A stretch of 63,331 nt of DNA, the filler included, from Octopus bimaculoides (taxonomy: Eukaryota): assembly GCF_001194135.2 (NCBI RefSeq). It is 8 parts of 7 records of this genome, joined end to end, with 100 filler letters (N's around TTAATTAATTAA, not from the genome) between each part and the next. Parts side by side here need not be neighbours in the genome. Positions count along the whole stretch, not along the records: positions 35,728 to 40,749 come from NW_026385730.1; 7 more parts are not named here. One strand, given 5' to 3'. Made by a program: the position numbers and the translations under genes. This document shows, piece by piece, positions 36,552 through 37,505 of the stretch. Below the pieces are notes generated by a model. The model did no database searches. It had not been told where the DNA came from and was given only the letters and a program-made list of their open reading frames with translations. Within the stretch, counting starts at the first letter, position 1; each line of letters begins with the position of its first letter.

Positions 36552-37505
36552 ATGAAACTAAATGAAACTCGATTCTTTAAAATGCTGGAATTTTATCGAA
36601 AATTTAATACTATAAGGACAGCAAGTTTGAAAATATCATCGTTGAAATCTTTTAAGTTTAAAACTATTTGTTTGCAAATTTTTTATATACTCCTTTCTAT
36701 GCATATTATTTTAGATCCTGTTCGCCACATTGTTGCCTTATTGGAACTGGAATCTTCTCACCCTCATGTAATATTCTTATATTTATATATAGTATTGTAC
36801 CGGAGTTTTACTTCATTGTTTTGTTTGGTGAAGCACTTCAGAGGATCTAATGTCAAACAGCTAATTGAAATATACACCAAACTGGAAATTAAAGATGAAG
36901 ATGAAGAATATTACAATTCTTTTTTGATATATTCGTATAGAAGATTATCTATATTAATAGCTTTGAGTGTCATTTGTAGTCTAATTATGCATCTTATTTT
37001 GCCGCTTCTCAGTCTTGACTTGTTGACGTTCTTTACATATCCCGTACCAAACCATATTACATACACCATACCTGTTTTAATAGTGCAGGTTGTATTTAAT
37101 TGCATATCCTTTATGTCCGTGGTAATTGACCTCTATGTAAATCTTACAATTGTTTTCACACTCATTCATGAATTCAATAAGGTGTCGAATGAGGCACGGC
37201 ATTACATAAAAGAAAATCAATCGTCGAATGCATTTCTCATCAAGCAACATAGACATGTTACCGAAATATGTAACACACATGATACTCTTTCTTCAATCCT
37301 GGCATTGGTAAATGAATCCTTGCAGATTATTTCAGGATATATTGTGTTCAGTAGTATTACGAGCTGCTCTATTCTTACTTATGGAATTATAAATGGTTTA
37401 CTGGGAAGTAACAAGTATTTATATGTATATGTATCTGTGATAGCATCCGGTTATTTCTTGTATTGGATTGCAGTTTTTTGGTGTGGAATTCGTATAAACC
37501 GAGCG
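36552..37505 (+). CDS. Large coding exon of a multi-pass membrane protein, probably gustatory-receptor-like (GRL / 7TM ion channel superfamily); 3'-incomplete, TM7 exon(s) not located
   Basis: 318 non-repetitive codons with no stop. Six hydrophobic stretches (approx. aa 38-57, 73-93, 132-161, 173-207, 259-284, 289-312). TM4 is followed by HEFNKVSNE and there is an ICNTHDTLSSILALVNESL segment before TM5, resembling the GR F..lN and H..L...v..lN motifs. The frame meets a consensus donor GCG|GTAAGT in phase 0 at 37505/37506, just after TM6. CDS status is well supported; the family call is by-eye inference. Confidence 0.8.

Follow-up and report, generated by a model that had tools for sequence, protein, structure and literature searches.

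Do octopods carry genes of the superfamily that includes the gustatory and odorant receptors of insects? The question is raised by one locus in a stretch of 63,331 nucleotides from Octopus bimaculoides (assembly GCF_001194135.2; hereafter the window), which consists of eight parts joined end to end and along which positions are counted below unless another sequence is named. In the part that comes from NW_026385730.1 (35728-40749, hereafter the piece), a single long reading frame had been read, in what we call the original prediction, as part of a gene for an insect-type chemoreceptor. We conclude that the exon at 36552-37505 on the plus strand (hereafter the focal exon) is very probably the first coding exon, a large one, in an octopod gustatory-receptor-like (GRL) gene, which belongs to the seven-transmembrane ion channel (7TMIC) superfamily together with the gustatory (GR) and odorant (OR) receptors of insects.

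The piece is 37% G+C, and the open reading frame (ORF) at 36552..37529 (+), of 325 amino acids, is its sole long frame. The stop-free stretch at the focal exon spans 350 codons and the second longest in the piece spans 110, while 200 shuffles of the piece gave a stop-free maximum of 208 codons (mean 101). The chance expectation is about 1e-6. The interval 36552-37505 comprises exactly 318 codons with its own ATG and is followed at 37506-37511 (+) by GTAAGT (...RINRA|gtaagt), and the 5′ splice donor is therefore in phase 0. Hydropathy analysis shows six segments, at residues of about 38-60, 73-93, 131-153, 170-200, 257-279 and 290-313, which agree with the helices of an AlphaFold2 (AF2) model; the donor lies directly after the sixth transmembrane segment (TM6). 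Before TM5 the exon encodes a loop motif, H243-x2-L246-x3-L250-x-L252-V253-N254, which falls within the block that is best conserved across the family described below (ICNTHDTLSSILxLVNESL); codons 243-256 (HDTLSSILALVNES; 37278..37319, +) form the core of this H..L.......N block, in the predicted cytoplasmic extension. The features named in the original prediction, namely the only long stop-free frame, six hydrophobic segments, a polar loop before TM5 with H..L....l.lvN and a phase-0 GTAAGT donor right after TM6, were all borne out in the piece.

The exact product of the focal exon has no match on record, and a first homology search found two relatives alone, P0001 (83% identity) and P0002 (45%), each on a short genomic contig from Logan. 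An exhaustive HMMER search over 1.84 billion representatives found 17 family proteins, and a profile-based second homology search made one addition, P0017. Within these representatives the family appears to be small and restricted to octopods. Nearly all 17 proteins are read-through ORFs in which 'VS' (that is, GTnAGy) directly follows the exon boundary. Two are spliced models that NCBI gives for Octopus sinensis, both named "uncharacterized protein": P0009 (XP_036361419.1, LOC118764607 isoform X3) and P0015 (XP_036361423.1, LOC118764608 isoform X3). Four relatives, P0001, P0002, P0004 and P0017, come from one run series (SRR11869384-394) and range from 83% to about 20% identity to the focal exon; therefore, at least four divergent paralogues exist in one octopod genome. 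The search for paralogues, a check that the original prediction had pointed to, thus recovered relatives in O. sinensis and on Logan contigs, and the O. sinensis relatives bear out the octopod origin. One Logan contig (P0013) holds a 360-residue ORF in which an unrelated N-terminal part is joined to scrambled pieces of the family large exon; the probable explanation is a pseudogene that has been rearranged or a chimera of the assembly.

An AF2 model of the 318 residues built with 18 family sequences reached a predicted local distance difference test score (pLDDT) of 83.9 and a predicted template modelling score (pTM) of 0.81, while a model built with three sequences alone was unusable (pLDDT 43). 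When the model was compared with the PDB by Foldseek, the first seven places were all taken by ORs, Orco or GRs, among them AgamOR28 (8V3C/8V3D), the ApisOR5-Orco complex (8Z9A), Orco (6C70) and DmGr43a (8JM9), with DmojGr43a (8ZDZ) at rank 10 and MhOR5 (7LIC) at rank 13. The OR/Orco/GR matches had probabilities of 0.85-1.00 and TMq values of 0.41-0.65, compared with probabilities of at most 0.23 and TMq values of at most 0.27 for all other folds, ABC exporters and G-protein-coupled receptors (GPCRs) among them. The training cut-off of AF2 (April 2018) is earlier than the first OR/GR structures, and the model is therefore unlikely to be a memorised template. In the model, a cytoplasmic N-terminus rich in lysine and arginine precedes the helices, and long TM4 and TM5 helices extend into the cytoplasm. 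The predicted cytoplasmic segments contain 23 lysine or arginine residues and the extracellular loops contain 1, and by the positive-inside rule the N-terminus is predicted to be intracellular, a topology inverted relative to that of GPCRs. In fold and topology the modelled product of the focal exon is a 7TMIC protomer that lacks TM7 alone. The checks proposed earlier for fold and topology hence came out in favour of an insect-type receptor, with insect OR/Orco/GR structures and no GPCR or transporter as best matches and with the N-terminus inside.

The seventh segment can be read from the spliced paralogues. The GR/GRL motif in TM7 is (T/S)Yhhhhh(Q/K/E)(F/L/M), which is regarded as diagnostic, though not definitive (Benton et al. 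2020, PMC7746228). Past the exon boundary, P0009 and P0015 run on as VHSITRSIHYMQFQDIKPEVVAKILVFLNRLTTESHGIDVGGCFVITPSSTLTMIGSFITYILVVIQTKSL, and the tails of the O. sinensis paralogues (LOC118764607/8) end in GCFVITPSSTLTMIGSFITYILVVIQTKSL, in which TYILVVIQT matches the motif at 3 of 4 positions. This tail is present in XP_036361419/23 and in isoforms X2/X4, joined to family large exons.

Sequence profiles place the family with animal GRLs with differing strength. With Pfam 7tm_7 (PF08395), P0009 scored 27.4 bits (profile positions 165-367 of 370), just above the curated cut-off (GA) of 26.6 bits, and P0015 scored 15.7 bits, below it; a conceptual full-length protein from O. sinensis (Osin_70016) scored 21.3 bits over positions 31-367 of 370, and other conceptual isoforms were filtered out. 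The HMM-to-sequence evidence for membership of the family in 7tm_7 is thus borderline. Profile-to-profile comparison by hhalign was made with a template of six animal sequences from supplementary file 6 of Benton et al. 2020, namely ORCO, DmelGr64a and the GRLs of Saccoglossus, Strongylocentrotus, Nematostella and Trichoplax. The full octopus family profile matched this template with a probability of 98.3% and an E-value of 1.2e-14 over 325 collinear columns (query 12-388, template 21-354 of 355). The tail alone matched with 96.1% at the extreme C-terminus of the template, and the body alone, which is the part encoded by the focal exon, matched with 80.6% (E-value 1.3e-5, score 46.8) at the collinear TM4-TM6 region. 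As the null we used the reversed template, which gave about 1% and a score of about 21, together with the body-only comparison, in which the best score of the body against 30 block-shuffled templates was 31.9; against the full-length query, block-shuffled templates retain whole blocks, TM7 among them, that go on matching, and so they are not a clean null. In the alignment, TY is paired with TY and Q with Q, FVIT..LT.IG falls opposite iTk.liltv.G, and H243 meets the conserved histidine of animal GR, GRL and ORCO sequences. The original prediction had expected a TM7 with a TY..QF-like motif in the spliced product; the O. sinensis paralogues carry TYILVVIQT in this exact register, with TY and Q in place and threonine at the position of the final phenylalanine.

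The gene organisation of the family is visible in O. sinensis. We analysed 91 kb of chromosome CM016866.1 (L005) around P0026, which is LOC118764607 isoform X4. On one strand of L005 lie seven homologues of the focal exon, each of which aligns with all 318 of its residues, at 9566-10519, 12449-13402, 31361-32314, 39882-40835, 51142-52095, 56579-57532 (with one in-frame stop) and 70016-70966 of L005. All seven end in ...N-R-(S/A)|GT(A/G)AG(T/C) in phase 0, and at least 6 of the 7 start with ATG. Downstream of them are three small exons, T1 to T3, all with phase-0 introns: T1 at 75234-75302 (VHSITRSIHYMQFQDIKPEVVAK), T2 at 79184-79273 (ILVFLNRLTTESHGIDVGGCFVITPSSTLT) and T3 at 81267-81323 (MIGSFITYILVVIQTKSL, then the stop), which bears the TM7 motif. 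Of the phase-0 introns characteristic of GR and GRL genes, the first, after TM6, is represented by the conserved donor of the focal exon, and all three are in phase 0 in L005. Any large exon of L005 joined to T1-T3 gives 389 residues (388 for the exon at 70016), and one recorded product of 389 residues has its start upstream of L005 and shares the end position 81323. T1 has an internal alternative acceptor 42 nt into the exon (tttcag|GAC), used by isoform X4 (P0026), which lacks VHSITRSIHYMQFQ relative to X3 (P0009) and so has a third intracellular loop (IL3) that is 14 residues shorter. At the second locus, isoforms X2 and X3 of LOC118764608 have differing bodies and identical tails. Between the two loci, the last 67 body residues of P0009 and P0015 are 43% identical and their tails are 92% identical.

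The array also shows signs of turnover. Four of the L005 exons (12449-13402, 31361-32314, 39882-40835 and 51142-52095) share 89-94% identity and have upstream flanks that are almost the same; they represent recent tandem duplications, in units about 8-19 kb long, or gene conversion. The remaining exon lineages are 40-45% identical among themselves. The opposite strand carries two incomplete copies of the large exon, at 38150-37778 (-) and 49662-49282 (-) of L005; these fragments and the exon with the in-frame stop are signs of birth-and-death turnover.

Several results weigh against assigning the focal exon to a GRL gene of this kind. The focal exon alone did not match Pfam 7tm_7, which was the outcome of a check put forward earlier, and it did not match this profile when joined to the O. 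sinensis tail either; single-sequence searches of Pfam and the PDB with the focal exon gave nothing useful, only MscL at an E-value of 0.12. The family profile retrieved no solved GR or OR structure from the PDB sequences (hmmsearch). No Foldseek match reached an E-value of 1e-3 or lower, the values running from 1e-2 to 5e-1 with a best of 1.4e-2, although these modest values are due in part to the query being without TM7. The last position of the TM7 motif in the O. sinensis paralogues is T, not F, L or M. A scan of 37506-40749 for TY..QF-like motifs and a tblastn search of it with the O. sinensis tail found no TM7 exon. An exact look-up of five conceptual 389-residue O. sinensis isoforms showed that none equals an existing NCBI model. 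Finally, the O. sinensis orthologue of the focal exon is not among the L005 exons, which are at most 50% identical to it; its place in an array with shared 3′ exons is therefore by analogy only.

On that analogy, we think it rather probable that the focal exon does stand in such an array, with a variable ligand side (TM1-TM6) diversified on a constant TM7. Of the features that define such a locus, an ATG and a donor of its own are seen at the focal exon. Every O. sinensis family exon with visible context is found in an array with shared 3′ exons (seven in L005, one upstream of it and two bodies in LOC118764608). This last result argues against a conventional stand-alone GRL gene, in which the focal exon would be spliced to small TM7 exons of its own, lying between a few and tens of kilobases downstream; the search for a tail exon, which was negative within 3.2 kb downstream, also speaks against it. 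We nevertheless give such a gene modest odds, well below even. A large exon followed by three phase-0 3′ introns is the commonest GR/GRL structure (PMC9998090), no neighbouring large exon occurs in the 5-kb piece, the orthologue of the focal exon is not one of the L005 exons, and tails do get duplicated, as at least two separate O. sinensis tail sets that are 92% identical indicate.

For the GRL gene with alternative large exons, the following mechanism can be proposed. The transcript would be completed when the focal exon is spliced to three small phase-0 exons that lie beyond the piece on the downstream side, as in the O. sinensis paralogues. The intron would begin at 37512 and run through 40749 (+) and past the end of the piece, which makes it at least 3.2 kb long. 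The small exons would supply about 71 residues, which cover IL3 and TM7 with TYhhhhhQ, to give a protein of about 389 residues. The focal exon would have several alternatives, likewise large exons with an ATG and a donor of their own, and splicing to the shared 3′ exons would be mutually exclusive among them all, so that the ligand side (TM1-TM6) would be diversified while the pore and anchor helix TM7 would stay constant, as in Drosophila Gr39a and Gr28b. By analogy with the solved insect channels (PMC7746228), the protein may assemble as a tetrameric ligand-gated cation channel, in which TM7b would line the pore, TY would lie at the subunit interfaces and the final motif residue would lie at the gate. 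Threonine at this last position, which is also found in Saccoglossus SkowGRL1, could alter permeation. A sensory role of the octopus family is a hypothesis, and part of the literature on non-arthropod GRLs also links them to development (NvecGrl1). The insect-type chemoreceptor of the original prediction is in this way supported as a GRL of the 7TMIC superfamily by fold, topology and the TM7 motif of the paralogues, with the chemosensory role inferred.

Comparison with the closest relative shows that the focal exon has been maintained by selection. It is 86% identical at the DNA level to the orthologous contig L001 with no indel, and against the 83%-identical orthologue the ratio of nonsynonymous to synonymous substitution rates (dN/dS) is 0.17, with dS 0.49 and a proportion of synonymous differences (pS) of 0.36. 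The focal exon is thus a real exon under purifying selection. The donor, GCG|GTAAGT, is found at the same codon in both contigs, L001 and L004, and protein similarity to P0001 and P0002 stops at the donor codon; all full-length members of the family read through the donor as 'VS'. In the 5′ flank (35790..36551, +), about 760 nt align with L001 (26-691) at 76-82% identity (blastn), and the alignment ends about 40 nt past the donor; such a pattern, with similarity kept upstream and lost soon past the donor, is what a coding exon bordered by a true intron shows. The identity of this flank exceeds that of the synonymous sites of the exon (about 64%), which suggests a constrained promoter or 5′ untranslated region (5′UTR) that belongs to the individual exon. 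At 36492-36504, about 48 nt before the ATG, lies TGTGYGATTGCAG, which is conserved in L001 at about 640-652 and might serve an upstream 5′UTR exon as its 3′ splice acceptor; the element was not seen upstream of the large exons of L005.

These results bear directly on the idea that the focal exon is an orphaned or decaying large exon, open yet neither expressed nor spliced. Decayed copies do occur in the family, given the in-frame-stop exon and the two reverse-strand fragments of the O. sinensis array and the degraded or scrambled look of P0007, P0011 and P0013. The focal exon, however, has an intact frame of 318 codons, a low dN/dS with no indels at a dS of about 0.49, and a conserved ATG, donor and 5′ flank, and we regard it as improbable that it is such a pseudo-exon. 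That the exon encodes an unrelated multi-pass membrane protein (a GPCR, a transporter or another six-TM protein) with a merely compositional likeness to GRs, for which the failed direct Pfam and solved-structure searches and the modest Foldseek E-values might speak, is largely refuted and very improbable in view of the structural matches exclusively to OR, Orco and GR with low TMq for GPCRs and ABC proteins, the collinear hhalign match with a clean reversed control, the N-terminus inside, and the TM7 motif and phase-0 intron pattern of the spliced paralogues.

Within the superfamily the octopus proteins resemble the GRLs of other non-arthropod animals in plan. Like Trichoplax TadhGRL1, Saccoglossus SkowGRL1 and Nematostella NvecGRL1, they are predicted to have about 390 residues, seven TMs, an intracellular N-terminus and the OR/GR fold. 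Their TM7 regions are strikingly alike, with GGCFVITPSSTLTMIGSFITYILVVIQT in octopus, GGFVITKPLILTLIGIFITYFFLLAQI in TadhGRL1 and ...TYFALVAQTI at the end of SkowGRL1, which also has Q-T. The octopus family differs from the other GRLs in its body, which is too divergent from TM1 to TM3 for detection by HMMER or Pfam, and in its gene organisation as an array of multiple first exons. With the insect channels Orco (6C70), MhOR5 (7LIC), AgamOR28 (8V3C) and DmGr43a (8JM9) it has in common the predicted fold of TM1-TM6, TM4 and TM5 helices that reach far into the cytoplasm, and the TY...Q of TM7, whereas identity is 9-13% and the last motif residue is T in octopus and F or L in insects.

The closest parallel in gene structure is found in Drosophila. 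In Gr39a, large exons that encode six TMs and have their own start codon and donor are alternatively spliced to three small TM7 exons, and pseudo-exons and exon duplications are present in the array (PMC2204066). The Gr39a, Gr28b and Gr23a loci and L005 are thus alike in having alternative large exons and three small shared exons for TM7 and the C-terminus, and Gr39a-type loci and L005 also share pseudo-exons, recent exon duplications and purifying selection, with omega of about 0.17-0.27 (PMC2204066; L005). The octopus array is larger, at over 70 kb with at least eight large exons as opposed to four or five in Drosophila, and the evidence for mutually exclusive exon use consists of a few NCBI isoform models from O. 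sinensis. Since the octopus array is lophotrochozoan and not orthologous at the sequence level, the architecture probably arose independently. Very large arrays of this kind would also resemble the clustered protocadherins. The octopus array provides a lophotrochozoan case for the repeated evolution of receptor loci with variable and constant exons, and a case for the conservation of GRL gene structure, with phase-0 3′ introns, across animals.

GRLs are known across animals, including molluscs such as Aplysia (PMC7746228). In the literature that we searched, no mention of a cephalopod GR or GRL was found. Robertson in 2015 reportedly lists Lottia, Crassostrea and Aplysia and no cephalopod. The octopus GRL genes are already predicted at NCBI, as "uncharacterized". 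Since other molluscs are already reported to have GRLs, the octopus family extends the known picture and does not overturn it. Reviews from 2024-2025 attribute contact chemosensation in cephalopods to chemotactile receptors (CRs) derived from nicotinic acetylcholine receptors (nAChRs) and to GPCRs. Like the CRs, the GRL family consists of candidate ionotropic sensory receptors of the same animals; the CRs differ in being functionally characterised, nAChR-derived Cys-loop pentamers, whereas the GRL family is predicted to form 7TMIC tetramers, and the two are unrelated in fold and origin. A selected and diversified octopus 7TMIC family provides a second candidate ionotropic sensory family for the suckers, the olfactory organ and the skin. 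More tentatively, and at odds that we judge to be low, octopods may have a lineage-specific and hitherto undescribed GRL family in which alternative first exons stand in very large arrays and share their TM7 exons. Such a family would provide a combinatorial repertoire, for chemoreception or another sense, that runs parallel to the CRs, with an architecture convergent with Gr39a and Gr28b.

Microsatellites and interspersed repeats fill the part of the intron that lies in the piece. ARAGORN and Rfam found no tRNA and no real RNA family in the piece, only sub-threshold low-complexity matches to microRNA (miRNA) models. Microsatellites of (TA)n, (ATAG)n, (ACAG)n and (TG)n type lie at 35728-35770, 36030-36117, 36156-36193 and 40408-40483, respectively, and explain most of the other ORFs of the piece and the sub-threshold miRNA-model matches. 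A TY-x5-QF sequence on the minus strand at about 39566 was rejected as a TM7 candidate, as it lies in a microsatellite-like stretch with stops. The intron contains three copies of a roughly 170-nt interspersed repeat, at 37695-37862, 38106-38273 and 38353-38456, that are 74-80% identical. This repeat bears a tRNA T-arm-like GAGTTCAAATTCC box and looks like a short interspersed element (SINE), and no tRNA match to it was found by ARAGORN or Rfam. A second repeat family (TCGTCGTTTAACGTCCGCTTTCCATGCYAGCATGGGTTGGAC) has two copies that are 96% identical, at 39761-39805 and at 40705-40749, the latter cut by the end of the piece, and the first copy is enclosed by a 39-nt inverted repeat (39685-39723 / 39850-39888).
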